From: Dimorphilus gyrociliatus
Lineage: Eukaryota; Animalia; Annelida
Direction of reading: 5' to 3'
Assembly: GCA_904063045.1 (NCBI GenBank)
Contig: CAJFCJ010000105.1
Span: 1-39,320, forward strand
DNA: 39,320 bases
Positions 11,076 through 39,320 of this stretch are shown piece by piece. The translations under genes were made by a program, and so were the position numbers. The notes below the pieces were generated by a model. That model saw only the letters and a list, made by a program, of their open reading frames with translations. It did no database searches and had not been told where the DNA came from. Numbering within the stretch: the first letter of the stretch is position 1; every line of letters begins with the position of its first letter.

Positions 11076-12561
11076 TTAACTAGTGGCGCCATCTCCCAAC
11101 AAATTATTAATGTCTTTAAGTTGATCTTCATTCAGATTGCAATTATCAAAATTTATAGTTTTTAAGGAGTTAGAAGATTTAAAGAGTCTGTTATAAATGT
11201 TTAAAAATCCATTATCTCCCATATCCGGATTAAATTCCATATAAATTCTCTCAATTTTTGAACAACCGTTCAATAATTGTCCAATAAGTACACTTTGATT
11301 CTCATTCAAATTACAAAATCCAAAAGCAATCTCTTTTAAAGTATTTGATGATTGAACTAATCCTTTGCAAATCGTTGATAATCCATTTCCCATTTCTTGA
11401 TTCCAACCCAGATTTATTGATTCTAGTTTGGAACAATTTTTCAATAAATTTCAAATACTTTTACATTGATCACCATTCAAATTGCATGAACAAAAATTGA
11501 TAGATTTTAATGATATTGATGATTGATGAAGATAATTGCTAAGATTTAATAAACTGTAGGCCATTTTGTCATTTTGCTTTAGATTAATTGTTTCTATATT
11601 CGAGGAGTTCTTTATTAAATTCCCTAAATGTTTGCATTGAAGACTGTTCAAGTTACAATCCACCTATTGACTTCTTGTAGGGTTTTTGAAGATTTTAAAA
11701 GTTGTTTCCAAGCATCAATGAGTATGCTTCCTAAATTTTTGTTTTCAGATAAATTGATACTTTGAACGTTGACACAACTCTTTAAATATTGCTTAAAAAT
11801 TTCCTTCTCGTATTCAGAGTTGCATTTCTTAGTAAAATCTATAAATAATGGATCGTCTCTTGGGAGATTGGGTCTATAATTTAAATTTTCAATTACATAA
11901 TCAATTTTGAAATCATCTAATATTATAATTTTTGGCATTTTGTCAAGAAATTCTTTTAAAGTATCAATTAGATTATCTTCCATAATATTCTCATTAAATT
12001 GATCCAAAAGATTTTCTCTGTAGGATCTAACATCATTAAAATCTCGAGAAATATTCTTAAAAATGTTGTTCAACTTTTCAGTGTAAAAACTATGAAGATT
12101 TTGTATTTGTTTTGAAATTTCTTCATTATTTCCTCTTTCTTCCTTAACACAAGATTTAATTAAATCATTTATATTTTCTTGTTTTGTCATTGACCTAATT
12201 TCGCAATAACAATGATCTTCTGTTAAACACTGTGTACATAGATTTTCAACATTATGAGTTTTACAATAAAGACTTGTTTCTTTTTGATGTTTTTCACATA
12301 ATTCATCATTCAGATATATTTTTTGAAATGATTGATAAAGAATATTTTTCTTTAATTATCAATTTCTCTTCTTGACAATTGAAAATTTTCTCTACAAACT
12401 GGACAGGTCATTACTGAATCATTTTTCACTAGTTTAATTAGACAATTAAGGCAAAATGTATGTTGACAAGGTAAGAATCTTGGATCCTTTTCAACCCATG
12501 GTTCTAAACAAATAGCACAAAGAAGATGCTCTTCTTTAATAAAATATCCACTGGCAGCCAT
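11076..12561 (-). pseudogene. TRIM-like RING - B-box2 - coiled-coil - RNI-type LRR gene
   Basis: RING CAIC..PCQHTFCLNC..CPVC; B-box CEKH-x7-CKTH-x5-CTQC-x4-HCYC at about 12200-12300, in frame with ORF 11648-12190; then 57-aa paired LRRs. Frameshifts near 12355 and 11665; TGA at 11451-11453. Confidence 0.85.
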
Positions 12562-15060: not shown

Positions 15061-15405
15061 TCTTCTGGTATTATCTCTTTGTTTAATGAAATTTTAATTC
15101 ACACTTCCAACAGTTTTTAAAGTTCATGTTGTGATTTCTATAAAAAGCTTCTATGAAAAGTGAAGAAAAGAAATATACCTTCTACTTTTTGTCAAAACAG
15201 GAAACGGAAATTGTAAAACAATGTATAAAATATACTTTTGAAATAAGGAAAACTCATATTAATTAGTCTGAAAATATTTTAAATCTTATAATAATTCTTT
15301 TACATATCTGAAATCACTATATTATATTACTTATTATATTTTTTATTAATTTTATATTTCTTTGTTTTTTCTTATTTATTGTATATAATTAGCAATTAAC
15401 TCAAA

Positions 15406-15457
15406 ATGCAACAAAGTAGGCTGAAATGTCCAAAGTGGGCCAAACTGTCACTGCACC
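15406..15457 (-). mobile_element. Orphan MULE terminus (GGTGCAGTGA type)
   Basis: Reverse complement GGTGCAGTGACAGTTTGGCCCACTTTGGACATTT matches the terminus and array at 31815-31935. Confidence 0.75.
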
Positions 15458-16955
15458 ATTTGAAAAAAGCTTCTTCAGAGTGTTTGATGACATTTGAAGT
15501 CCTTCACAAGTATTTAATAATCCATTTCTCATTGTTTTATTACATCCTAGCCAAATGTTTGCAGTATGGAACAATGTTTCTGCAAATCTCTAATCTGTTT
15601 ATGTTGTTCTTGATTTAAATCACACTGATTTAAATAAAGAGTCTTCAGAGTGTTTGATGACATTTGAAGTCCTTCACAAATTTTTAAAAACCCCTTTCCC
15701 ATATTACTATTCCCTGAAAGATTGATTGTTTCCAGTGTGGAACAATGTTTCAGCAAATTTCCAATCTCTTTAGCTTGTTCTTCATTTAAATCACAGTCAT
15801 TTAAATAAAGACTTTTAAGAGTGTTTGATGACATTTGAAGTACTTCACAAATATTTGAAAATTGATTTTCCATATTACTATTCTCTTCTAGAATGATTGT
15901 TTCAAGTATGGAACAATGTTTCAGCAAATTTGCAAACCCTACACTTTGTTCTTCATTTAAATCACATCGACCAAAACCAAGACTCGTCAGAGTCTTTGAT
16001 GACATTTGAAGTCCTTTACAAATATTAAATAAACCAATTCCCATTTTACTACTCCCTGATAAATTGATTGTTTCAAGTATGGAACAATGTTTCAGCAGAT
16101 TTGCAAACCCTACACCTTGTTCTTCATTTAAATCACATCGACCAAAACCAAGATTCATCAGAGTGTTTGATGACATTTGAAGTCCTTCACAAATATTAAA
16201 AAATCCAATTTCCATTTTACGACTTCCTGCTAAATTGATTGTTTTGAGTATGGAACAATGTTTAAGCAAATTTCCAAGCACTACACTTTTTCCTCTATTT
16301 AAATTACACCCATCTAAATGAAGACTTTTCAGAGTGGTTGATGACATTTGAAGTCCTTCACAAATATCTAAAAATCCAATTCCCATATTACTATTCCCTG
16401 ATAGATTGATTGTTTCCAGTGTGAAACAATGTTTTAGCAAATTTCCAATCTCTATACCTTGTTCTTCATTTAAATCACAGCCATGTAAATTAAGAGTCTT
16501 CAGAGTCTTTGATGACATTTGAAGTCCTTCACAAATATTTAAAAATCCATTTTTCATATTTCTACTCCATGCTAAATTGATTGCTTCCAGTATGGAAGAA
16601 TGTTTCAGCAAATTTCCAATCTCTTTACCTTGTTCTTCATTTAAATCACAGCCATGTAAATTAAGATTCTTCAAGGTGTTTGATGACATTTGAAGTCCAT
16701 TACAAAGTTTCAAAAATTGGTGTTCCTTTTTTATCTTCAATGATTGATGTTGACATTGCTTTGTATTGTTTTGTCAAGCTTCTGTTTGCATTGTGGACAG
16801 GAGAATTCAATATTGTCCTTTGGTAATTGTTGAATACTTTGAGAAAAATATGTATGTTGACAAGGCAGCATTTTTTGATCATTTCTCACCAACAATTCCA
16901 AGCATTTTGAACATTTAGTTTGTGTTTCATATGTTGTAGATCACTTGGCAGCCAT
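15458..16955 (-). pseudogene. RING-remnant plus tandem 57-aa LRR gene
   Basis: MAAK*..CSKC..LPCQHTYFSQS..CPQC (16955-16745) resembles the 12561 RING; frameshifted onto the 397-aa LRR ORF 15547-16740 with about seven 171-bp units; LRR continues frameshifted up to the TIR at 15457. Confidence 0.8.
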
Positions 16956-17867
16956 TTTGAAAACAGGACTTTTTTACTTTTGTTTTCTACAATTGTAGCT
17001 CTATCTTGTGTTTTTCTTCTGTGAAATTTCCTTACTTTTTTCAAACATATGAATAATAATTTATGATGTATTTTATTGTTATAGTTAGGAGTTATGAAAT
17101 TTTTTATATTTTTAGTTACTAGAGAAAATTTGTAAAAGGTATAACTAAAACATGGACAGCACTGTTTTATATAAAGAATATTTAATATTAATTAATCATT
17201 CATCTTGTTAACAAAATTAATTGCATAATATAACTCACACTCTCTAACCAGGAACAGTAAAATACAAAGAAACAATTTAAAACAAGCAACTCTTCAAAAC
17301 ACTATCAGGATATCTTTTCAGATTGAAATTGACACTATATCTTGATTTATTAGATTTGTTCATAATTGTATATAAAAATCAAAAATAGGCTGCTTTTTGA
17401 TATCTGCCATTCTATATGCAGATATCTATTTGAATTGCATCACAAGTAGTATATTCCACAGTATTTGATACAAAAAGAAAAATAATGATGGGAAAGACCA
17501 GAAATTCTTTCAATTACAATGCAATAAAGTACAAATGGAAAGGAATTCAGTGTTGATATTCCAATGTATTTTACACCTAATAGCGATCCATGGTCTTCTG
17601 CATCAGGGGATCCACATTTTCAACAAAAATTGTGGATTATCCCAATCAGATGACTAGATGATATAATATGTATTACACTTTACTATGATAGAAGTTATAT
17701 AATATGCAATATACTTATGAACTAAGTAATGTCCACCCTTTAAATAACAGCTATTAGGTAAATCTATTTAGAAGGGAGCTTTACTTTACATAAATCCCTA
17801 CTGTTTTGTACCAATCATCCTATTGTACAACTTTGGTTATATTTTACATGCTTGAACTCTATATGTT

Positions 17868-18487
17868 GTGAAAGCAAATCTTTTAGATTATTTAACTGGT
17901 CCTGCAAAGGATTTGGTGTTGGCTCTGGATGGAGAGCCTACTGTGGAGGAAATATGGAAAGCCCTCCATGACGAATTTGATCTGGATCCTTTGGAGTATC
18001 AAGAGAAATTGCTTAACTTAAAGCAAATGAATGGCGAAAGTGTGGTTCAGTTTGTTAATAGAGCAAAGAAATTGATAAAGAGGTTTTCTCCACCTAGACC
18101 AATGGAACCACAATTGCTTGCAACTATGAAAGAAATAAAACTGATGGAAGTTTTACAAAGAGGATTACAACAGGATATTCTACATTTAGTGTACACCTTA
18201 CATCCTAAATGTCAAACATTGGCAGAACTATATGAGGCTGCTAAGCAAGCAGAAACTTCATTAAAACTAACTCAAAGAAAACCGATCACAATGGTGTCAA
18301 AATTGGAAACTCAACAAAGAAAAGAGACCAAAAAGACCCAGGTAATCAGAAAAGATGCTTCTACAGAAACCCCAAATTTTTGGAATAGAAAGCATGTACC
18401 TGAGAACAAAAATGCCACTAAAGAAAGGTTTTCAAGCCAAAAATTCCAAAAGTATGCACCAACTCCAACAAACAGGTATTATAAGAA
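17868..18487 (+). mobile_element. Retrotransposon Gag (capsid) fragment
   Basis: YLTGPAK, LKQMNGESVVQFVNR (major-homology-region-like) and LQRGLQQDI; cut at 18488 by a MULE terminus. Confidence 0.75.
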
Positions 18488-20222
18488 GGGTACAGGAGAA
18501 AACGTCCACTGGAGAAAACGTCCACTATGAAACTTCAAAGTAAGATATAAGATATTTGATAGACGGAGTTTTTAGAGCAATTTGACAGGAAAAAATGAAT
18601 AATAAGAATTACAAATATTTAAATATTAATATATTGATTAAGTAAAAACAAGCATTATAACAAGAATGATTGACAACAGTGTAACAACATTAAAGAATAA
18701 AGGTATTTTAAACTGGTGAATAAATGTCAGAAGCTTTATTGAGTAAGTCCAGGGAGGTAATTGAGGCAATTTCAAATTGTTCCCATAAGCTGAATATTTT
18801 GCTCTGAATATTCTGATATGCTTTTCTTTGCTGTCTACAAATTTTCTTTTCACTCAGTAATTTTTTATATAGCTTTATCAGATCAGCTTCTCTTTTCAGT
18901 TCATCTAAAAGCAAATAGAATGCAGTGTTAGAGCAAAGATTCTTGTTAAGCCTGTGATGCCATCCTTCAAGATCATTATTTGTCCTTATAGCCTCACCAT
19001 AAACAGACCATACCTCTGGTTTATAAAATCCATTTATCCATTGTGTCTCAATGTACTCCAATAGAGACTTCCTTTCAATAGGACTTATTTCTTTAATAGT
19101 CTTAAATGTTGGTTCTATTAGATCAGAGGGCAGGAATGGTAATGCCATTAATTTCTTCATGATTCTATATTCAGCTTTTTTCTCCTTGACATCTTACATA
19201 ATCCTAATTCCTGGAAATAAATATGTCAGTTCTATCTAGACCTCGAATACTAAATTAAAGTATTACTTGAATCTTTCTGTATATTGCCTGTGTCCAGTGA
19301 AAAACACACCCTTTAATGTTTGCTTCAGGATAAGTGAATGATAGTGCTTTCCAAATAGCTTTTTCAAAGTCTACAACAACTTTTTTGGGGCTATGCCCCT
19401 TTGTTAAATCTTGTATTGTTAATTTAACAAATTACATTATTCAATTTAAAATGCAAAAAGGGTCTTTCACACATTTAAATGTGCCATCCATAAACCATAT
19501 TTTGCCTTTAGATAATAATTCAATTTGCTTTGTAGTTGAAAATATTAGTATTCTATCATTCTCTGTTTGTATATCCATTTGTAAAAAATCATCAGGAATA
19601 AAAGTTTTAGCCAAGTTGAAGTGAATACTTTGAGGTTCAGCTGGTCTAAACTTCTTTCTTGTCCAGTTTGCCAGTCTTGTACAATTATCTAGAGATGGAA
19701 TAACTTCACTAGAACTACAATGTTTCACCAGAACATCTTCAGCTAAACATTTTCCTGAACTACTGATATCTTTATTACAAGCATTTGTTTAGTTCATTCC
19801 TAATCATTATATTTATTTCCAAATCAGGTACTCTTTCATGAGAATGGGATAACTTTCCAGGATAAACACTGTTCCCATGCTGACTAACTGTTGCTGAACA
19901 TTTATTTCTTTTGTTCCTAACACTGCATATCCAGAATGTTGTCTTGTTTCTTTTTTCTTTAATATTGTAGCAGAAATTGTTGAAAAGTAGCAAATCTTTT
20001 CCTTTCTGGCTCATTCCCTTTAAGATTTTAAATGAATAACTTTCTTTCTCACAATCTGATTTTGGAGAAACTATAAATGAAACTTCCATCATATTATTTT
20101 GCTAAGCTGGAAGATCTTCAACTAAAACATTGTGTGATTCCATAATACTGCCATTTGTATCATTTCCACTTGAATTTCCACAATGATTTTCACAAACAAT
20201 AGTTTGCTCATTTCTATTATTT
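18488..20222 (-). mobile_element. Defective Phantom/MULE element (GGAGAAAACGTCCAC family)
   Basis: Terminus GGGTACAGGAGAAAACGTCCAC; FLYWCH 19775-20092, WFMDGTFK 19441-19728, VVDFEK..GCVFHW near 19300-19400, TNNDLEGWH 18708-19160; frameshift and internal deletion; 5' end cut by the next terminus. Confidence 0.85.
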
Positions 20223-20350
20223 GGGTGCAGGAGAAAACGTCCACAACTGAGGAGAAAACATCCGCAAGAGAAAACATCCACAGGAGAAAATGTCCACAAG
20301 AAAAAAACGTCCACAGGAGAAAACATCCACAACTGAGGAGAAAATGTCCA
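20223..20350 (+). repeat. Terminal repeat array of a second GGAGAAAACGTCCAC-family element
   Basis: GGGTGCAG terminus followed by about seven (G/A)AGAAAA(C/T)(G/A)TCCAC units. Confidence 0.85.
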
Positions 20351-20541
20351 TAGTGAAAGAGAATTTTTCTTTTTAAAACCTTTGGAGATTAAGATGGAAA
20401 GGAAAATTGAGAGAATAAATATATAATTTGTATTTATGATATTTTGATATGTTGAAAACAAAAACTAATAACTACAAAACAAACTGCAAAAAAATTATAA
20501 AAGACTAAGTTTATAACATGGTAACAAGCTAAATGAATGAG

Positions 20542-22562
20542 TTATGATGCAATATAAATGCTGGCTGCCTTCTCCAATAAATCTGATGCAGATATTAATC
20601 TGACCTCAAATTGCTCCCATAAGCCAAAGATCTGACTTTGAATTTTCTGATAAGGCTTTCTCTGTTGTCTACATATCTTTTTCTCACTTAATAATTTCTT
20701 GTACAATGTAATCAACTCTGCTTCTCTCTTTAATTCATCAATGATAACATATAATGAAGAATTGGCATGGATATTCCTGTTTAATCTATTGTGCCATCCT
20801 TCCAGGTCAATGTTGGTTCTGATTGCTTCACCATATATTGACCAGGTATGTGGTGGGTAATATAGCCACTGGTTCTTGATGTAATCAATAAATGGTCCTA
20901 AATGAGTTGAGGTTGTCTGTTCAATGTTTTTGAATGCATTTTCAATGATGTTTGATGGCAAAAATGGTAATGCCATTATTTTTTTCATTGCGTGGTAACA
21001 CTCTCCTTTTGCCTTATATTCACAAGAGTAGCCCAATTCCTAAAATTATTACATTTCTTAATTTTTTTGCAACAGATGATGATAAAAGTTACCTGAATTT
21101 TCCTATATACAGATTGGGTCCAGTGAAAGACACATCCTTTAATTATAACCTCAGGATAAACAGATGACAATGCTCTCCAGATACCTTTTTCAAAATCCAC
21201 CACAAATTTCATTGGGAAATGTTGATTGGTCAGCTCCTTTATGGACTTTTTTTTAAGAATTTTAATACTTAAAAAAATTGAAATTAAAAGTATGTATACC
21301 TGAAATAATTTCTTATAAGCTGTCTTTTTCTTCGATCCCATAAATGGAAACAGTAATGGAACTTGTTTCATTTCTCCATGTTTTTTGATGAACCCATGAA
21401 CTGTGAACAATTGGTAAAATGGGTCTCTGACACATTTAAATGTTCCATCCAAAAACCATATCTTTCCTTTAGACAGTAGTTCAATTTGTTTTGGAGTTGA
21501 AAAAATTATTATTATGTCATCTTTCATTTTAATATCTTTTACCAGAAACTCATCTGGTATAAATGATATTTCAAAATCACTTTCCATATTTTCATTAAAT
21601 GACAAATTTAGGTCAACCAATGAAGAATAATTTTTTAGTGTTTTTCCAACATATGTAATTTCTTCTTTAGTTAAATTGCATAATTTAAAATTAATTTCTT
21701 GTAAACTACCAGAAGACGATAGTAGTCTATTACAAACTTTGAAAAAACCAAGTTCCACATCTGTATTACATGATAAATTAATTCTGACTAATGAGGAGCA
21801 ATTTTCCAATACCTCTGCCAGATGACACGCTTCATTTTCACCTATTTTACAATTTGAAAAGTTAATTTCTCGTAATGTATTCTTTGATGATTTTAATATT
21901 CTACAAATGCTCTTAAATCCATCGCCTGTACCTTCATTGTATGATAAATTTACTTTTATCAAAGAGCAGCTGTTCTTCAAACTTTCTCCTAAATGTTTCA
22001 TTTCATTTGTATTTAAATTACATGATGCAAAATCAAGTTCTTGCAAAGTTTCAACAGAAGATTTTATTCCTTCAAAAATTCCTAAAAGTCCAACAGTTTC
22101 AATATTTGTATTTCCAGATATCTTAAATGTAGTTAGAGATAATAATTTCATTGTTTTTCCCAAATATTTCATCTCATTTTGTAGATTACATGATGTAAAA
22201 TCAATTGCTTGTAAACTACTGGCAGAAGATTTGAGCCCTTTGCAAATCTCCATTAAATTCTCTCCCATGTTTTCATTGTATGATAAATTTAATTTGACAA
22301 GAATGCAACATTCTCTTAAAGTCTCTCCTAAATGTTTTGCATTTTCTTTATTCAGGTCACATGACTCAAAACAAATATCTTGCAAAGTCTTAGCTGAATT
22401 TTTAAGTCCCTTGCAAATTTCTTGAAATCTTGAACTCACATTTTTATTGTAAGATAAATTAATTTTCACTAGAGAATGGCATTTTTCCAATTTCAATCCA
22501 AGTTGTTTTACTGAGTATGGGAAAAAACGTCCTTGGGAAAAAACGTCCCTGGGAAAAAACAT
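20542..22562 (-). CDS. Chimeric LRR - MULE transposase ORF (spliced: 22562-21300, 21245-21093, 21039-20542)
   Basis: About 11 RNI-type LRRs run in frame into FIPDEFL..WFLDGTFK; GT-AG introns of 54 and 53 bp at family-conserved positions; VVDFE, CVFH and TNIDLEGWH intact; nearest ATG (22562) lies inside the adjacent TIR. Confidence 0.75.
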
Positions 22563-25320
22563 CCCAGGGTGGGAAAAAACGTCCCAGTGTGGGAAAAAAC
22601 GTCCCAAGGTTAGGAAAAAATGTCCCAAGGTTGGGAAAAACAAGTAGTGGGATAAGATATTTGAATTTTAAAAAAGATTGCTCTATTTTGGGAACCAATG
22701 GCAATATACTGAGAATATAATAATTAATAATGAATATATGTTTATTAAAATGTATTAAAAATGAAAAAAGCTAAGAATGTTATACAAAGTTTAAAAGTTA
22801 CTAGAATAAAGTATAAAGTATGTTAAGACACTGAGAATTATTTTGAATAGATTAATGCAATCTTCTGCAAGAGGACAGCAGATGTAATCATTCCCAATTT
22901 GTATTCATCCCAAACAGCAAATACTTGGTTCTGCTTCTGGATGACACTTTTCTTCTGATACTTCTTTAGCCTTTTTTCTGATAGAAGTTTCTCTACAACT
23001 GGAATAAGACTTGATTCCTGTTTTAAAATATCTATGAGCATATAAAATGACCCTTTTGCAGGAGTCTTTTCATTATTCTTCTGTGCCATCCTTCAACATC
23101 ATTGTTGGTCCTGATGGCAAGACCAAATACAGACCAACAATTTGGTGTCCAAATTGAATGCTTAATCCAAGTACTTTCAATGTATTGGAATAAATCCAAA
23201 AATTCATTTCTCTCAAAGGCCTCATCTTTTAGCATGTAGAAACTGTTTAGAATGGCTTCATCTGGAAGAAAAGGTAATGCCAAAACTTGTTTCAGCAGTC
23301 CTGCCTTCTTCTTTTCCATATTATATTGTTGTGTGTATCCCAAATTCTACAATAATTTAATAATAAGGCCAACCACTGAATTTAAATATAAACTTACTTG
23401 AATTTTTCTGTAGACAGCTTGTGTCCAATGGAAGACACAACCTTGAATAGGAATATTAGGGTAAACTGAGTTAAGAGCACTCCATATACCTAATTCAAAA
23501 TCAACTACAAATTTGTCAGGTTGAAAACCATTTGTCAATTTTTGAATCTCCTTTTGATAAGATGAAGTTAATGAAACAGAATTAAGCAACCAAATCATAC
23601 TTACTTTAAGAATCATTTTGTACACTTTTTTTTTCTTTGATGTTAAAAAAGGAAATGCTAATGGAATTTGTTTTGCTTCTCCATCATTTTTAATAAAAGA
23701 ATGAACAGAAAAAAGCTGTACAAATGGATCCTTCACAGCCTTGAAAGTGCCATCTAAATACCATACTTTACTTTTACATAATAAAGACAGCTGGTGCTTA
23801 GAAGCAAATAGTAAAACTCTTTGATTTCTTACAACAATATCACTTTGAAGAAAATCATCTGGTATAAATGTTGTATTAAGTTCAAAATCAATTTCGTTTG
23901 GTTCTTTAGGCCTTGATTTTTGCCTATTGATATTGGCTAATCTCCTCAGATTTTCCAGTTTTGGTAGGTTATTTTCACTTTTATTTAAATTAATTAATAG
24001 ATCTTCAGCAATTGCTCTTCCAGATGACTTGATGTCTGCATTACAGATTGCTCTCAATTCTTTTCTAGCAGAAATATTCACAATAAGGCTTTTCCTTTTG
24101 TTATGATTGTGTTCATGTTTACTCTTTATGAAAATATTTCCTTTTTGTTGAATAATAACTGGACATTGAATATTCTTATTTCTAACAGAACATCTCCAGA
24201 TGGTTCTCTTGTCACTTCTAGATTTTATATTAAAAGCATAGCCATTGTTGGTCAAAATATCTTTCCCTTTTTGACTTCCACCAATAATAATATGAAATTT
24301 GTCTGAGCTTTCCGTATTCTCATTATTTTCAGTTTCATTTTCATGCAATAAATTTTCCTCCATATTAGAAGTATTGCTAACTTCTTTAAGACTACAATTG
24401 TCTTTAACCATATTATTATGAGCACAACTCAGAGCAGCTTTTACAATAGGATCATCATTGATCACATCTGATAAACTAATGAGACAATATCTTTCACTCA
24501 AACTTTTGCATGAAGAACACTTATCATCTTTCATTTCTGTAATATTAAGCAAAGTTAAATACATGTATGTTTTACATAGTAAATATCACCTTTACAGATA
24601 TGATGACAAAGTGAACATGTAGTTTCTTGAATCCTGAACTTTTCTGCACAATTATTGCAAAATACTCTTTCAGATTCTAAATTGAAAATGAAAAAAGTGA
24701 ATAATTTAATAAAAACATATAAAGAGACAGACCTTTGATGCATTTGGCATGGACATAATCTTGGCAGTCATTGCATTTCATCTTTCTCTGTCTGCCATAA
24801 AATCTTTTATTACAATTAATACAAACAGGTGCCATTACTAAGTTTCTGCAAAAATAAATTCACTTTCAACTATCAAATATGGCTGCCTATACAAAAATTA
24901 TAAATAATAACTCACTGGAAAGAAGTGTTCTTAAAAAATGTATAATCTTGTACTATTCAATAAACTAAATCAATACCAGAGTTTCAATGCTTAAAAAACA
25001 AATTAGCCTGAAAATATGCCAAGAAATGCAAAATTTATCTTTCACTTACAGACAAGACAAGGAAATAACTCATTTCTCTTTTAATAGCATTACATAATTC
25101 AGAGAAAACTGGTAAAAACATCACAATACATATCCCTTTCTTTAAAAATATTAATATTTTATTCTATAAATGAAATAAACAGCAAAGAGAAAAACATTTC
25201 TGATTATAAGTATAAATAATTATGCCAAGTATATCTTTTGCCAGGCATAGGACGTTTTTTCCTGTCCTGGGATGTCTTTTCCCAGGGACGTTTTTTCCCA
25301 AGGACGTTTTTTCCCGACCC
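22513..25320 (-). mobile_element. Near-complete Phantom/MULE element (GGGAAAAAACGTCC family)
   Basis: Inverted repeat arrays at about 22513-22645 and 25238-25320; no matching TSD in the flanks. Confidence 0.85.
22838..24835 (-). CDS. PHD-FLYWCH-MULE transposase (5 exons, one frameshift)
   Basis: MAPVCINC-x12-CNDC-x4-HAKC|ESERVFCNNC; introns 24677-24732, 24537-24589, 23551-23604 and 23347-23397; WYLDGTF, VVDFE, CVFH and TNNDVEGWH present; 1-bp frameshift near 23073. Confidence 0.85.
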
Positions 25321-26700
25321 CATATCATCTTTTAAAGAATTTATCACTGTGGTATTAAAAACTTCATTTTTTACACTGATCTCTTCAATTATACTCTTGA
25401 AATTATCAAATAAAGCTATGAATAAAGGAAGAAAGAGAAAAAAAATTAAAAAAAAAAATTTCTCCATTTTATTTTTACTTATTTCATTCATTCTTTCATT
25501 TGGTGAAGTATATACAAATATTTCAATTATTTCTAATGGAATTTCTTTAGTATCCAAAGTAACAGTTTTGAAAATATTTATATATTTTCCATTATACACA
25601 ATTTCACAAGTTAAATCATGAATTTCAAAATCTACTTGAATTTTCTTGGAATAATTTCTAATACAAAATGTACTTTTTGAATTGTAAATTGTTTCAGGTA
25701 GTTTGTTAACAGTAATTGAAAAAGTTGCGTTAGTTTGTCCATTATACAAAGCTTGATGAAAAAAAGAAAAAGTTTGTCAAAAACTTCTTTTTTTTTATTT
25801 ATTACATACATGGATTAAACTTTCCTGTATATAAGAAAACACTGTAAACAGTTTGTATTGTTATCATATCAATTAGAAAGTACGGTTGAATATTATAATC
25901 AGTATTAGATAGTATTGAATAAAAACATGTTAAATAGTTTCTATCGTAAGCATTTTCTTTGAAAAAGTTCAAGTATTGTCCTCCTGTTAATGTCTTGGTA
26001 TTATTCATATTTAATAATGTTATATCTGTTCAAAAATAGAAAATTAAACAATTAATTAATTATTCATTCATTTATTAAAAAATGTTTACTTTGATCTCCA
26101 ACATATTTTCCTTCAACATACACATCACAAAGAGTTAATGAAACATTTTCTTCTGTTAATTGTATTTTAACAAATGAACCAATTGCTCTACTTAAATTAT
26201 AACAACTATATTGATTAAAATGTTTGGAATTTGGTTTTTGTACTGGTTCATTAACATAAATTGAATGTGATTGGTTATTCATTAATCCAAGTCCAATTGA
26301 AATTGTAAATTTCTCTAATTCATAGGCTACAAAAAAAAAATATGGAAGATTTATTTGTTTGTTTTCTTCTATACTTACATTCGGCACTCTTAATGTTAAG
26401 TAGGCAAACTCTTTGAATTTCGTAAACATTTCCAAGGTCAACTGACCACCATGAAATATTTGATAATATTCTACCAGTTTTTGAACATGTTAAAATATCC
26501 TAAACAAAAATAAAAAATTCAAAGAAATTTAAATAAATAGAGAAAAAACAAAAAGTTTGTATTAACATTAATATCAATATTTTCATCATTAGCCTTCTCT
26601 GGTTGATGAACAAACATGCCATGATCTGCAATAGAACTCTGAAAAGATTGTTTTCCTTTTGCTAAATTTGTTTGAACAGTAATATATATGTTGAAATCTG
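25321..26700 (-). CDS. Tandem F-type lectin (fucolectin/FTP-like) domain gene, truncated at a MULE terminus
   Basis: TNLAKGKQSFQSS..KANDEN|CSKT..SWWSVDLGNVYEIQRV..GSFVKIQL..LTLCDVYVEG; second domain NAYDRNYLTC..PYFLIDM..GKYINIF..LEIIEIFVY; several short GT-AG introns. Confidence 0.75.
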
Positions 26701-28100: not shown

Positions 28101-28784
28101 ATATTAAAGGTATAGTTTGTCTATAAAAAATATTGCATAACTCATTTTCTATTCTTGGATTTTTTGTCTGCAGGAAATTAAAAAAATGACTAATGATTCA
28201 ATGCCAGAGGAGGTAGTTGTTGATTTTGAAAAAGGACTCTGGAAAGCTCTGAAATCTATTTATCCAGCAGCATCCATAAGAGGGTGTGCATTTCATTGGA
28301 GCCAAGCTGTGTATAGAAAGATTCAGGTAAGATGAATATGTTAATATTGCTACAGTTTAGCTTTTATTATCTATATCTTTAGAATTTGGGATACAGTAAA
28401 GATTATCAATCAAACATGAATAATGGAAGGTCAACATTAAAAAAGATATTAGCATTGCCATTTCTTCCTTCTACTACAATACCAACAATCTTTAATTTAA
28501 TTGAGAATGGTATGGGAGCAAGAAACAAATATGCTGATTTGTTAGATTATGTTCGATCTCAATGGATTGAAAATTCAATTTGGCAACCTCAACAATGGTC
28601 TATGTTTGGTTATAGTGTCAGAACAAGTAATGAAGTTGAAGCTTGGCACAGAAGATTGAACAGTAAAGTCTTAGCCAAAGGCTCCTTTTACCAATTGGTA
28701 GATGAACTAAATAAGGAAGCTTCTCTTATTGATGTTTATAAAAAACTTTTATCTGAGAGAAAGTTGAAGAACACCAAAAGAAAG

Positions 28785-31491
28785 GGGTCGGGTGTGAACG
28801 TACCTGGGTGCGAACGTACCCGGGTGCGAACGTACCCTGGGCGGGTGCGAACGTACCCAGGTACGTTCGCACCCTATTTTTATATTTATTTTATTTTTGA
28901 ATTTTTGAATAAACATGTACATTGACACCCTTTTTTCCTTCTGTTCCTTCATTATATATTTGTTAATATATTGATTAGATAGAATGCAGATATTAAATAG
29001 AATACATATCCCATCAATATTAAATTACTACTTTAAAAGAAAATGTTGTTGAAAGTGAAATAGCAGCCATTTTAATAGTGATAGTTTTATTAAATAAACT
29101 TTCACTTGGAATATTTATCCTTGCAAAAGTAAAGCTATATTTACTGAATAAATTTGGACAAAGTTCTTCTTGGAAGCTTCAACAGAAGTGAGTATTTATA
29201 TCTAATCATTGAGATTGTTGATTCATGATATTTTGATGTAATATACTATATTCAATTGTGAAAAAGCTGAATATTTTTCATAAATAAAATTTCAGCCATT
29301 TTGAATATTTGGAAAGGAAATTTATTGATAACTGGAAATATTTTTAGATAACCATCTACATTTGATTGAAGATTAAAAAATGGCTTTCAAATGTCACAAT
29401 TGTCATTCAACAATTTATGGAAGGCAAAAATATTTGAAATGCAGCCTTTGTAAGAATCTTATTCATAGGAAATGCACAGGTATGTAACTCTTTAATCAGC
29501 TTTCATGTAATTATATTTTTTAACATATTCTTATAGAAACACATAACATACCAATTTGCAAACCTTGTAACAAAAGAAAATGTACTGTCATGCTCAAGAA
29601 GTTAACTAATCTGGAAATTCATCAATTCAAAGTAAATTCTGAAGAAAGCTTTATTGATGAAAGAAATAAGATTGCTGCAGTTGAGGAATCAATATTGGAG
29701 GATGAAAATCATGTTCTTTCAGAATGCCAATCAATGGACCTAGACTCTTTGGAGGAAGTTGAAGAGAATGCTGAAGAATATTGTGAATCATCCACAAAAA
29801 GTGATTTTGAGATTGTAAAAGGAGGAAGTAGAAAGGGACATGACATTTTACTGAATGATGGATATTCTTTTGTTGTTAAACATAAAACACCATCAAGTAC
29901 TATTTGGGTGTGCAGTGTGAGAAGTAAGAAGAAAAGATGTGTGGCCAGAATAAGACAAAATGGAAATTTATTTCTCAAAGGCAATTTGGAACATAATCAC
30001 AACAGAAAAAAGAATTTAGAAGTGGATATTAAAGTGAAAACAGATTTGAAAATTGTTTGCAGAAGTGATAATCAAACATCTGGAAGAAGCATTGCTGAAA
30101 AAGTTCTTCTATCCTATGAACCCAATGCAACTTGTCTTCCTGATATCAACTATTTGAAGAGAATGGCAAACTCAAATAGACAAAAGTTTAGGCCAGTGGA
30201 ACCTAAAGTGTACAACTTTAATTTAGATGAAACATTTTTGCCTGATGAATTTTTGCAGAAAGATATTTGTGAAAATGGAGAAAGAATTTTAATCTTTGCA
30301 ACAAACCATCAGCTGAATTTATTATCAAAATCCAACTGTTGGTACATTGATGGTACTTTCAAGATTGTAAAAGAACCATTTTATCAACTTGTCACTATTC
30401 ACTCATTTGTTAAGAAGAGTGGTGATATGAAGCAAGTTCCTCTTGTTTTTATTTTTCTGACTTCAAAGCATACCAAAGCATACTTACAAGCATTTCAAGT
30501 AAATATTTCATATTATCTCTTCAAAAGTGATGATAAATAAAGTTGCTTTTTTGTAGCATATCAACAATCTTATCAATGATTTTCATCCAAAAAGAATTAC
30601 AATGGATTTTGAAAAAGGACTATGGAAAGCATTATCAAAAGTATATCCCCTCACTGAATTTCAAGGTTGTGTATTTCATTTCACACAAGCAGTATACAGG
30701 AAAATACAAGTCAGTTACATTCAAATATATATAACATTATCTATTAAATAACTTATATTATTGAATAGGCTCTTGGCTATGTAAAGAAATACAAAGAAAA
30801 AGGAAATGATTGGAAAGATTTCAGAAAATTGATGGCTCTGCCATTCTTGCCAGCACATATTATTCAACCAACATTTGACAGCATAAATGCAGAACTTTGT
30901 GAAAAAAATAGATTTTTGGACCTGCTGCAATACTTCCAAACAAACTGGATCAAAAATAAATTATGGAAACCAAATAACTGGTCAGTTTTTGGTTTGTCTA
31001 TTAGGACCAATAATGATTGTGAAGGATGGCATCAAAGAATGAATAGTAAGCTGCCTGCTAAAGGTTCTTTTTACATGCTGGTTGATGAGCTAAAAAAAGA
31101 GTCTGAGTTGATTGCAGTTTATGAGAAATTACTGTCAGAAAAAAGGATTTACAAACATCAAAAGAAAAAGTATATTGACATCCAAAAGAAAATTTTTGAT
31201 TTATGGGATGATTTCAAGTTGAACAAATTGACATCAATTGATCTATTAATGCAGACATCCCATATCTACTCTCCAGCATAAATATCATTTGTCAAGCTTT
31301 ATTGTTTTTTAGTATAATATTTAGTCTTTTAAATACATACTTTTAGATTTATAGCTAAATCTTTTATTCAAAAATTCAAAAATAAAATAAATATAAAAAT
31401 AGGGTGCGAACGTACCTGGGTACGTTCGCACCCGCCCAGGGTACGTTCGCACCCGGGTACGTTCACACCCAGGTACGTTCGCACCCCAACT
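28785..31491 (+). mobile_element. Complete Phantom-like Mutator element, 2707 bp
   Basis: 129-bp TIRs (28785-28913 and 31363-31491, about 5 mismatches) built from GGGTGCGAACGTACC units; 11-bp TSD CCAAAAGAAAG (28774-28784 and 31492-31502). Confidence 0.95.
29380..31281 (+). CDS. Intact PHD-FLYWCH-MULE transposase, join(29380-29479, 29537-30498, 30557-30709, 30769-31281), 575 aa
   Basis: GT-AG introns of 57, 58 and 59 bp keep the frame; CHNC-x12-CSLC-x4-HRKC-x8-CKPC; FLYWCH IWVCSVR..C..HNH; D (WYIDGTF), D (TMDFE), CVFH, E (NDCEGWH). Confidence 0.92.
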
Positions 31492-31669
31492 CCAAAAGAA
31501 AGAATATTTGAAATTACTGGTTAAAATATTCAAATTATGGGATGATTATGATTTAGGGTTAGGAACAGCAATGGATCTATTGGAAAAAGTATCAAATATA
31601 TATGTATCATAACTTGCATATTAACCTCTCTTGTCTAGCCCTGTAGTTTAATTCTTGATGTTTTTGGTG

Positions 31670-31814: not shown

Positions 31815-31935
31815 CGGTGCAGTGAAATTTTGGCCCAGGACAGTTTGGCCCACTTTTGGACATTTTGGCCCAGTTTGGACATTTCAACCCAGGACATTTC
31901 GGCCCATTTTAGGACATTTTGGCCCACTTTGTTAC
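31815..31935 (+). repeat. MULE terminus with GGACATTTTGGCCCA repeat array
   Basis: CGGTGCAGTGA followed by about five TTTGGCCCA/GGACATTT units. Confidence 0.8.
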
Positions 31936-32236
31936 ATTTTGAGTTAATTACTAATTATATACAATAAATAAGAAAAAAACAAAGAAACATACAATAAATA
32001 AAAATAAAATAAGTGTACACTTATGAACTATGGTTTATAGATATTTTATAAATAGTACTTACCATATTGTAGAAGTGTTGAAGTAGATGTTGCCTCTGAG
32101 GTAAATGGTACCAAACTCCTAATTTGATTACCTACAACCCAGCAGGAGAGTACAATAAGTAATATAACATAGTAATTTCAGATATGTAAAAGAATTATTA
32201 TAAAATTCCAAATATTTTCAGAGTAAGGGATACCAG

Positions 32237-34722: not shown

Positions 34723-37700
34723 CACATTAGAAATAACTTACTTAACTATCATTATGAAAATATATTAGAATGTCTAAATGGTGATGAAAAATTTCAAACA
34801 TTTCTACTACAGGAAGATGTGATTAAAGACAATTGTTTATCTGAGCAATTAGATTTTGAAAAGCTTTTTAAGGAACATATTCAATATGTGCCAACATCTA
34901 AATTCCTTTTAATTTTACTTAAAATGAACACAGTAAAATGTCAAAGACTTTCAGAATTGATTAACAATACTTGGACTATTTTAATGAAAGAGAGAAAGAA
35001 TATTTTATTAAAGGATTTGGAAACAATTCCAAAGTTTCCATTTTTAAAAGAAAATCCTTCTCAGATTAATTTCAGTAAAATTTTCACACCCATCCAATTG
35101 GTATCATCAAAAAGTAATCTGGTTGTTGATGAAAATTTTGATGATGTTAAATCCTTTCAAAAGATTTTAATTGATGAGGAAAATAAAAGAATTTTGATTA
35201 GAGGAGATGCTGGTATGGGTAAAACTTATCATGCAATGAAAATTTTACATTCATGGGTTCATGATGACACATTTTTGGACAATTGTCTTCTTTTGTATAT
35301 CAAACTTGGAGCTGTTCAAAGAACTGCATGTAAAGAATCTTTGGTTGATGAACTGTTTACAAATAATTTTAAAAGAGACTCCTGCATTACCAAAGAACTC
35401 TTTCAGTACTTTTTTGAACAGACAGAATGCAAAGAAAAGATGATTCTTCTTTTGGATGGGGCTGATGAACTGAAATATGAAGATTCAATATTTAATGATA
35501 TTGTAAAAAAGTGTAATTTTACAATTTATCCAGTAATTGTTTGGGCAAGAAATTGGAAAATTAGACATGTTAGTGATACCTATGATTTTGTATTTGACAT
35601 CAATGGATTCAATGAAAGACAATTGAAAATTTATTTTGAAAAATTTTTTAATGAAGACAATTTACCTGATTTAAAACTACCATTTTACCATAATAAAAGC
35701 CATAAGAAATTAACCACTAATTGTTTCCACCATGATGGAAAAGTTATAAAGAAATCTGATATTCTTTTTCAAATGTTAAAAACAGAAAACAAAGAAGTTT
35801 TTAACATTTGTAATAGTCCTTTAATAGCCTGTTTAGTAGCTGGTATTTGGGAAGAAACAGATACAGATATTATAGGTACTAGATATTCTATTTTTGATCA
35901 ATCCATACAGATTCTATTAACTAAGGCTGGCATTGATTCTAAAAGTAATGATTATACGAAAATTTTAGAATATTGTTCAAAACTGGCTTTTGAAAATTTA
36001 CTTTACAATAAAGAAATATCAATAAATGAAATTGTAAAAAAGTCAGATTATATTGGTGGATTATTGATTCCAGTTAAGAAAAAATCATCTATGACTCAAT
36101 TTAAAGAATTTACATTTATTCATATTTTCTTCCAAGAATATCTAACTGCAAGATATATCATAAATTTATACCAAGATAGCAAGAAAAATGAATCAATCAT
36201 TCAATCACTAAAAACATATTTTGACAAGTTGGAAAATCTATTTTTATTGAAAAATGTTTTCAGTTTTCTTCAAGAAATAAATTATAAAGTATTTTCTCAA
36301 ATTATTGAAGAGAATAAAAATATTCTTATGGTGTTGGAAACTGATCAAAGAATTATTGATATAATAAATAGAAGGCATTCAAATTTAATTGAACTTGAGT
36401 CAATATCATTACCAACAACTATTATTAATATTATATTTAATTCCTATAAAAGAAATATCAAGGAAATCATTTCAAATTTGTTAAGATAAATCTACCAAAT
36501 TTTATTGAGATCTGTACCAGCCAATTGGAAAATATATTAGAAATTTTTAAAATCAATGGAGGTATTGAAGAATTATTAGAAATTGAAATAGTAAAAAAGT
36601 TAATGACAAAAATGCAAAAATTAAGAGTTTTAAGTATAACTAATATTTTCTTCAATGGATGTTTAGAATTGTCATCCTTTATACATTCAACTACAATAGA
36701 AGATTTAACATTAGAAAATTGTAATTTACAAAAATGTTCACCTAAATTTTTGAAAATGAAATTTGATTGTCTTTATTATTTCAATATTTCTGAAAATCAA
36801 TTTGAAGGTAAGGAGTAATTTTTCAAATATGACTATTTTAAAACAATCAATTTTTTAGATAATCAGCCCTTTGATTATATTCTGAGAAATAACAGAGATA
36901 TTATCTCATTAAATATTTCAAAATGTTTTAATTCAGGAAAACAATCAGAAAATCTAATAAATCTTCTTCAACAATATCCAAATTTATCATTTCTTAATTT
37001 TTCAGACAATATCATTCCAAATAATATCTGTAATACAATATTTACAAATCAAAATAACCAACTCAGAGGTTTACAAATTAACAATTGTAACACAGAACTT
37101 GATTCAAAAGACATGATTACATTTTTGGAATTCAATAAAGAAATAGAAATTTTGGAGTTAAAAGGAAATGTTTTAAAAGAAAATGATGAAAACTCTTTTC
37201 TAACAGCTTTATTATCATTGCAAATTGTAAAACATCTGAAATTGCCATTAATAGATCATAAAGAAATGATTTGGAAAAAAGAAAAATTGTCTCAAAATTG
37301 TAAAAGTTTAATAAATCTGAAATTGCTGGATTTGGGAGAAAATTCTTTAGAACATGAATGTATAACTGACTTTTTTGAACAAGTTTTACAAAGTTCAAAA
37401 TATTTATATACTCTTTTTTTAAGAAAGTCTAAAATTTCTTCCAAAGTTATAAACATTATGTCAAATTCTTATAGACAGGTAACTTCAAAAACAGAAAATC
37501 TTCAAAAGCATAAACTTTATATGATATTTAATTCATGTGAATTTGACTTAAAATTGGATGATATTACTAAATTTTTCAATGGTATGTTCTACTTCATTGA
37601 CTTAGATATATCTCATACAAAGGCACAATTGGTTATTGATAATCTCTCCAATCTAAAATCTCTTGAGCAAATTGAAAATTTAATTTTAGCAAAGTGTCAA

Positions 37701-39320
37701 TTAACTTCAAACGATCTAGCCAAAATTGGAAAATGTATTCATATATTCACATGTATAAAAAAGTTAGATATATCAGACAATCCAATTGATTCATTTGCTC
37801 TTTTAAATTTTTTCAAAACATTCACTATAAATAATCACAAATCAATTAGACAACTCTACATACACAAGTGTAATTTTCATTTGAAACATATTTTACAAAT
37901 TTGTCAAGCTATTCAAAGTTTATACAACTTGGATATTTTAAATTCATTATACAATCCTCAAACTGTCAATAAACTAAACACTACAGAATTGGAGAAAATA
38001 CTTAATTCAAAACTATTCAATTTGTGTTTTATTCAAAAACTTTTAAGTGATTTCTCAGATATATTAGATAGAAGATTATTAAAAATTTCAAACAGTTACA
38101 ACTTTCCAATAAATAACATACTAAATATAATTAAAGAAAATCAATCAATAGATATTGACACATTGGAAATAACATCACAATTAAATTCAACTCAAATATC
38201 ACATCTAAAAGCAGCTATTGAAAAAAACATTTCTTTTCAAACATTACAAGCTTTCCTCATTGATGATAAAAACATATCAGAGCATGTTTTAGAATATAAT
38301 GACAACAATGTTAAAGACAAATGTTCAGATTTAGTAACATTTCTCTTAGAACACATTAAAACAAATTGCACAAACTTGACCTTACTTAGATTAAGCAATT
38401 GTTCTTTTCAATATGGGTTTGGTCATATTGTTGGAGATGCAATTTGTAAACAAAGTCTACTGACAAAATTATTTTTAAGTGACAATCCAATTGGAACAGA
38501 AGTTGGAAAAAGTATTTTTGAAAATATTAAAAGAAATTGCACAAAGTTGACAGCACTTGATTTAAGCAATTGTGGATTTCAATCAGGAATTGGTGATGTT
38601 GTTGGAGATGCAATTGGTAAACAAACTCTACTAACTGGGCTATATTTAAGTGACAATCCAATTGGAACTGAAGTTGGAAAAAGTATTTTTGAAAATATTA
38701 AAACAAATTGCCAGAAGTTGAAAAGCATTAATTTCAATAATTGTGGATTTGAATCAGGAATTGGTGATGTTGTTGGAGATGCAATAGGTAAACAAACTCT
38801 ACTAACTCAGCTACCTTTAAATCACAATGCAATTGGAACTGAAGTTGGAAAAAGTATTTTTGAAAATATTAAAACAAATTGCACAAAGTTGACAGTCATT
38901 GATTTCCAGAATTGTGGATTTGAATCAGGAATAGGTCATGTTGTTGGAGATGCAATTGGTAAACAAACTGTACTAACTTGGCTATCTTTAAGGGATAATC
39001 CAATTGGAACGGAAGTTGGAAAAAGTATATTTGAAAACATTAAAACAAATTGCACAAAGTTGACAGTCATTGATTTCAAAAATTGTGGATTTGAACCAGG
39101 AATAGGTCATGTTGTTGGAGATGCAATTGGTAAACAAACTCTACTAACTGGGCTATATTTAAGTGACAATCCAATTGGAACTGAAGTTGGAAAAAGTATT
39201 TTTGAAAATATTAAAACAAATTGCCTGAAGTTGAAAAGCATTAATTTCAATAATTGTGGATTTGAATCAGGAATTGGTGATGTTGTTGGAGATGCAATTG
39301 GTAAACAAACTCTACTGACT
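34723..39320 (+). CDS. NACHT-LRR (NLR-like) receptor, running off the window
   Basis: Walker A GDAGMGKT, Walker B LLLDGADE, CNSPLIA and FIHIFFQEYLTA; 1-bp frameshift near 36469; intron 36808-36858; LRR frame then reads open to 39320 by manual translation; acceptor at 34722 implies a further upstream exon. Confidence 0.88.
38448..39320 (+). repeat. In-frame array of 171-bp (57-aa) LRR pairs
   Basis: Units start at 38448, 38619, 38790, 38961, 39132 and 39303. Confidence 0.95.

Follow-up and report, generated by a model that had tools for sequence, protein, structure and literature searches.

A 637-codon spliced reading frame in the annelid Dimorphilus gyrociliatus runs from ribonuclease inhibitor-type LRRs straight into the DDE core of a MULE (Mutator) transposon. 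The open LRR-to-Mutator frame is real in the DNA. Its best explanation, to which we give a probability of about 0.8, is that the chimera is young and single-copy, a by-product of one deletion after nested transposon insertions in a transposon-rich NLR/LRR island.

Sequence context and element boundaries

The window (the whole stretch of 39,320 nucleotides that was analysed; contig CAJFCJ010000105.1, assembly GCA_904063045.1) is AT-rich, with a GC content of about 29%, and carries about 10 FLYWCH-MULE pieces alongside a NACHT ORF and several LRR arrays (Table 1); its closest protein relatives belong to D. gyrociliatus. DNA transposons of D. gyrociliatus are Mariner and MULE; TEs amount to 4.87% of the genome, are either old or very recent copies, and are clustered in gene-poor, closed-chromatin islands, and the median intron is 66 bp long (PMC7854359).

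The termini of MULE copies A, B, and C were set by analogy with element D, an intact FLYWCH-MULE that is nested, in the same orientation, in the last exon of MULE E (28171-28787 and 31493-31609). A copy of D on contig CAJFCJ010000059.1 of the same assembly (GCA_904063045.1; L001, 12385-15109) has 99.6% DNA identity and a perfect 9-bp TSD, GTCTACTTA, and the copies of D point to very recent MULE activity. The second copy is located between the NACHT and the LRRs of gene model DgyrCDS14643 (P0009), which reads through it; because it is a full element with a 9-bp TSD, this model merges a transposon with an NLR gene.

At about 15455 lies a second LRR/5'-truncated-MULE junction. Past ...NTLKKL, the 7-unit LRR array at 15472-16740 gives way to the last ~230 bp of the 3' region of an E-family MULE. 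The E-family piece (15275-15470, minus strand; compared with 31838-32180, plus strand) includes the subterminal array and has the same orientation as the LRR gene.

Table 1. Features of the chimera and its surroundings, in positions of the window (a slash marks the breakpoint in the protein)
Feature	Position	Strand	Description
Chimeric frame	22562 (ATG) to 20542 (stop 20544-20542)	minus	637 codons spliced, stop-free
LRR fragment	21578..22512	minus	single-copy RI/NLRP-type LRR exon piece, 311 aa (22511-21579)
LRR/MULE breakpoint	21577..21578	minus	protein ...NENMES D/FEISFIPDEF...
MULE copy B	20223..21577	minus	5'-truncated; without 5' TIR, without FLYWCH
Copy B DDE core exons	21577-21300, 21245-21093, 21039-20545	minus	stop 20544-20542
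Intron 1 of chimeric frame	21299-21246	minus	GT..AG, 54 nt
Intron 2 of chimeric frame	21092-21040	minus	GT..AG, 53 nt; frame kept only if spliced
Copy B 3' TIR array	20223-20350	minus	terminus ...CTGCACCC at 20223
MULE copy C	22513..25321	minus	complete termini GGGGTCGGG...CCCATACTC; FLYWCH+MULE (Pfam)
Copy C TIR arrays	25250-25315 and 22519-22640		arms 94% complementary
MULE copy A	18488..20222	minus	5'-truncated exactly at B's 3' terminus; FLYWCH+MULE
Element D	28790-31492 (28781-31501 with TSD)		intact FLYWCH-MULE; 9-bp TSD CAAAAGAAA, ends GGGGTCGGG...CCCCAACTC
NACHT ORF	34819-36489	plus	
LRR arrays	15472-16717, 38355-39320, 11076-12190		171-bp period

The chimeric reading frame

The sole in-frame ATG upstream of the LRR piece (22562-22560) lies inside the 3' TIR array of element C, a foreign TIR, and no start, promoter, or upstream exon of the chimera's own was found; any transcript would start in C's TIR or upstream of it. 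Besides the spliced frame, an ORF at 20985..22643 (minus strand) is open over 552 aa with intron 1 read through. The splice positions match those of P0037 (DgyrCDS14576), a public gene model of the sister family, which is without exactly the 18 residues that read-through of intron 1 contributes. The family majority has an intron 1 one base shorter than that of copy B, so the 54-nt length is confined to this copy.

A preliminary description of the locus had the architecture largely right. The LRRs do join the MULE without a stop or frameshift, as the spliced frame and the unspliced ORF both show; the neighboring TIR does provide the ATG; the TIR array that it placed downstream at 20223 is there; and the LRRs stand where the DNA-binding part belongs. 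It needs adjusting in other respects. Both family introns had been called in frame, which is true of intron 1, at its length in this copy only, and true of intron 2 only when it is spliced. The D, D, CxxH, and E of the DDE core are indeed present, and the core also has private changes, among them N549I and a deletion of two codons. The junction, put near 21570, exists, and its exact position is 21577/21578.

No NACHT was detected in the chimeric frame (Pfam), and the only NACHT in the window lies on the opposite strand; the frame therefore lacks the NACHT/NB-ARC that would define an NLR with an integrated decoy domain. Word-based protein searches returned no public gene model of 222-966 aa covering the chimera. 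Among 1.84 billion representative proteins, none had the same junction, and an exact-product look-up of the last-exon ORF of copy B in public assemblies gave no record.

The LRR fragment

The LRR fragment consists of about 5.5 units of 57 aa, in alternating 28- and 29-residue repeats. Against solved structures, its best matches were ribonuclease inhibitor and the LRRs of NLRP14 and NLRP5 (E 1e-18 to 1e-9), and matches to ribonuclease inhibitor reached E 1e-17 and those to NLRP14 1e-14. By its 57-aa register and these structural matches, it is an LRR domain of the ribonuclease inhibitor/NLR type. Both of its ends fall in the middle of a repeat, one at the 3' terminus of copy C and the other at the junction with copy B. 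The fragment stays open over 311 codons in DNA of 29% GC; since this is expected of an LRR gene that was broken recently, its openness is no evidence of function.

The closest LRR paralogue in protein collections is P0011 (DgyrCDS14786), an LRR-caspase protein with about 40% identity. In P0011 the LRR array is followed by the caspase domain, so that an LRR-then-effector layout is native to this genome.

ORFs 25328-25749 and 26067-26441, upstream of C, were considered as further exons of the LRR gene, for which no support was obtained; they had no Pfam hit, and the LRR paralogues do not match there. Both ORFs are on the minus strand. The first has a hydrophobic stretch, FFFLIFFLFLPLFIALF, and the second (26064-26441 in its longer delimitation) ends in ...SLTLCDVYVEGKY, a motif reminiscent of discoidin/F5-8-C-like domains.

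MULE copy B

Copy B carries a DDE/CxxH transposase core, with the motifs DGTF, VVDFE, CVFH, and DLEGWH. Its exon 2 matched Pfam MULE with an E value of 1e-4 on a 51-aa piece, which is below the gathering score, and the MULE half as a whole is 47-59% identical to annotated FLYWCH+MULE proteins. FLYWCH was identified (Pfam) in copies A and C and in P0003, P0037, and P0069, and not in the frame of copy B, which starts one residue past an ...IHSN linker. A scan for the B-type TIR motif found units at the 3' end of B alone and, upstream, no inverted partner. Copy B thus has neither the N-terminal zinc finger (FLYWCH) nor the TIRs at both ends with a 9-bp TSD of an autonomous MULE; with one of its ends missing, a TSD cannot exist. 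Having one terminus and no DNA-binding domain, the product of the chimera would be unable to move as an element.

The B family is multicopy and recently active. Copy B differs from the majority unitigs of the family by 10 substitutions in 1222 nt (about 0.8%). Its private coding changes comprise 4 nonsynonymous and 3 synonymous ones, 7 in all and too few for a selection test. The residue changes (family to window) are R350I, A406P, T455I, and N549I, the last of which falls in the otherwise conserved TNNDxEGWH motif. In addition, copy B has lost two codons that the family has and gained one extra base in intron 1. The pattern looks like the neutral decay of a very young copy.

The junction and its read support

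Unitigs and contigs of four public runs were placed on positions 20000-23000 of the window (k = 31). In DNA run X1, the LRR part is covered by one unitig (21548-22541; depth, 132.5) with 0 differences from the window, and the summed k-mer depth over the MULE part is about 1200-2200, ~10-fold above that of the LRR part. The unitig extends 30 nt into the repeat at each side, the maximum for k = 31, and k-mers of both junctions therefore occur in the reads at single-copy depth, a support that would not be independent if X1 is, as is possible, the assembly's own data. The absence of the junction from raw reads, named beforehand as an outcome that would speak against the fusion, was thus not observed. 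K-mers common to other copies end at 22512/22513 and at 20223.

Other copies of the B family read ...PEELTDIHSN/FEISF at the breakpoint (slash), where the ...PEELTDIHSN part corresponds to the linker ...RPAEPQSIHFN of family A. Past 21577, these copies have one continuation, which is common to runs X1 and X2 (as loose ends). Run X2, which has another organism label, contains the MULE; its depth over 21616-22322 is zero, but the run is too shallow for this to be taken as an absence. In the RNA-labelled runs X9 and X11, from other organisms, there were MULE relatives of 90-95% likeness and no more than 35 nt of LRR, and no contig bridged the junction.

An 810-nt contig of run X9 is ~93% identical to the B-family MULE (20304-21397). 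It omits 20843-21109 (267 nt), a segment whose borders read GT..AG on the plus strand, the strand opposite the gene, and represents a relative with an internal deletion or else a spliced antisense transcript.

The codons at the junction, GAT TTT GAA ATA, fit both the LRR consensus (..D/G-F-x-x-I-C..) and the N-F-E-I of the MULE, and a few bases of homology there (ATTTT/DF) are plausible. The earlier suggestion that DFEI resembles both parents is borne out to this extent; on the LRR side the resemblance is to the consensus, which the parent may have shared. P0037 was examined as a relative spanning the junction and discarded: it matched query residues 259-482, where the LRR part is a spurious extension into the MULE linker.

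Flanking copies C and A

No 9-bp TSD was found at copy C; its flanks, AGATGATAT and AGTAAAACA, mismatch, so at least one of them has been rearranged. A simple insertion of C into a continuous LRR exon (...NSLK/QLGLKLEK..., at a TAAAA repeat) was rejected on the same mismatch once the termini were derived from D. The last exon of C has a frameshift, with frames overlapping at 23035-23089.

Copy A ends in ...CTGTACCC at 18488. It matches residues 643-1155 of P0037 (DgyrCDS14576) at 80-99%, with protein identity put at 95-99% over the portion that both have, and the window contains nothing of residues 1-642. Family members of A run past 20223 into another sequence, also absent from the window. 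When the lost 5' parts of A and B were sought elsewhere in the window, 0 matches were obtained at up to 3 mismatches. Just upstream of its FLYWCH exon, copy A has a private nonsense codon, TAG at 20101-20099 (within 20099-20104), in place of the CAG carried by DgyrCDS14576 and by most of the family, whose majority base at 20104 is G.

A repeat at 17863-18487, 98-100% identical to L001 278-832, carries a PNMA/gag-like ORF on the plus strand (17868-18530). The repeat homology stops exactly at the 3' terminus of A (18488), and A therefore abuts or interrupts a retroelement.

Origin of the chimera

From what is observed, namely the breakpoints, the difference in copy number, how young B is, which parts are missing, and the lack of a TSD at C, we infer an order of events and a repair mechanism as follows. 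A B-family MULE would have inserted into the 5' region of an A-family MULE lying in or just downstream of an LRR gene. A single deletion, with one end within the LRR exon (21578) and the other within B (21577), would then have taken the rest of the LRR gene, the 5' part of A, and the 5' TIR and FLYWCH part of B. End joining or an aborted gap repair would have produced it, probably by way of the short ATTTT/DF homology. On the C side, the cut through the LRR exon falls exactly on the 3' terminus of C; as C has no TSD, this side probably also reflects a rearrangement, e.g., a deletion adjoining the transposon end.

This single deletion would explain why 21577/21578 is the only irregular junction and why A is cut exactly at B's terminus. 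This order is not unique, and other orders also fit the data. An instance of one MULE nested in another in the same orientation is present in the window itself: D, with its perfect TSD, interrupts the last exon of E. The frame would be open because both halves descend from reading frames and the events are young; luck is then needed only for the in-frame join (1 in 3).

One of the two origins proposed in the preliminary description, a fresh deletion product at short homology, is therefore the one that we favor: B is young and 5'-truncated, the junction is single copy, the LRR has no start of its own, and both LRR ends are breakpoints related to transposons.

Alternative explanations

The chimera may instead be a newborn gene, transcribed outward from C's TIR and spliced, its product an LRR protein ending in a DDE nuclease. 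On a wider view, MULEs that were recently active in this miniature annelid might preferentially hit and rearrange NLR/LRR arrays and so act as an engine of receptor remodelling. Three MULE-LRR cases are at hand here: the LRR/B junction, the E-family 3' end at ~15455, and the 99.6%-identical D copy in DgyrCDS14643. The proposal is unlikely.

Less likely still is a capture resembling that of plant Pack-MULEs, by which a B-family element would have acquired a copy of the LRR fragment through gap repair from a gene elsewhere, the fragment travelling with that element now or at an earlier time. As in Pack-MULEs, a host gene fragment stands beside MULE sequence in the same orientation, with a possible chimeric ORF; here it lies directly upstream of the MULE core, and the junction is one of short homology. 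Pack-MULEs, however, have both TIRs and a TSD, usually lack the transposase, and have a parent gene elsewhere, none of which was found for the chimera. The upstream B-type 5' TIR is absent; the array found there (22519-22640) has the 3' orientation and is the 94% partner of C's own 5' arm, so that no two TIRs with a TSD enclose the fragment. The LRR piece is single copy in X1 even though B is only ~0.8% diverged, which argues against a recent parent copy, and the nearest LRR in protein collections is about 40% identical.

A functional new gene is very improbable. In this reading, which includes the ligand-sensing nuclease/recombinase or integrated-decoy protein of the preliminary description, an LRR sensor would be coupled to an active DDE nuclease or recombinase, or to the transposase as an integrated decoy, and expressed from C's TIR. 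A translatable product is possible, as the 637-codon spliced frame is intact with its DDE/CxxH motifs and splice sites, and native LRR genes with C-terminal effectors exist, e.g., the caspase of P0011. The junction is nevertheless a singleton without a relative that has it, even among the 1.84 billion proteins, and public models of 222-966 aa leave it uncovered. The frame has no start, promoter, or upstream exon of its own and borrows its ATG from a foreign TIR; the DNA-binding part and one terminus are gone; and without a NACHT it is not an NLR with an integrated domain. The private changes, at 4:3, look neutral, and one of them lies in the conserved TNNDxEGWH motif. The ligand-sensing or decoy proposal accordingly finds no backing in these data.

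That an assembler misjoined two repeats is very unlikely: multicopy MULEs make up the region, and the best DNA run could be the one behind the assembly, but one unitig of uniform depth and without a difference from the window spans into both repeats as far as k = 31 permits.

Comparison with known systems

Truncated copies of MULE/Mutator elements, and deletions beside Mu ends, are familiar from the literature on maize Mu and the P element. Copy B is like them in keeping one precise terminus while the other is lost, with an internal join to host sequence at short homology, and copy C corresponds to the adjacent element with a terminus and no TSD. The present case differs in its annelid host and in that the lost part has been replaced in frame by an LRR exon fragment, giving a long chimeric ORF.

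Host-transposase fusion genes likewise have host and transposase domains in one frame. Domesticated fusions of this kind usually retain a DNA-binding domain, show conservation between species, and are expressed, whereas the DNA-binding part is what the chimera has lost.

In a survey of domain co-occurrence, LRRs rank with the multicopy domains found most often together with TE domains, for the most part in few taxa (PMC12062965), and a MULE domain has been listed for predicted NLR proteins of Fabaceae (PMC11734081). In D. gyrociliatus itself, DgyrCDS14643, the top match with both domains, likewise has NLR/LRR and MULE in one predicted protein, with the MULE inside or beside an NLR gene. There, a complete D-like element lies between NACHT and LRR; in the chimera, a truncated element is fused directly to an LRR exon.

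Significance

The chimera is most likely an ordinary kind of thing in an unusual-looking form: young, single copy, and immobile. It shows that nested insertions and one deletion can yield a long chimeric ORF that looks designed. This is a warning to domain-architecture surveys, as the annotation of the same species already contains a merged model of NACHT, inserted MULE, and LRR. Were the chimera expressed, or were MULEs to target NLR/LRR arrays genome-wide, active DNA transposons would be connected, in an animal, with the turnover of innate-immune receptors.
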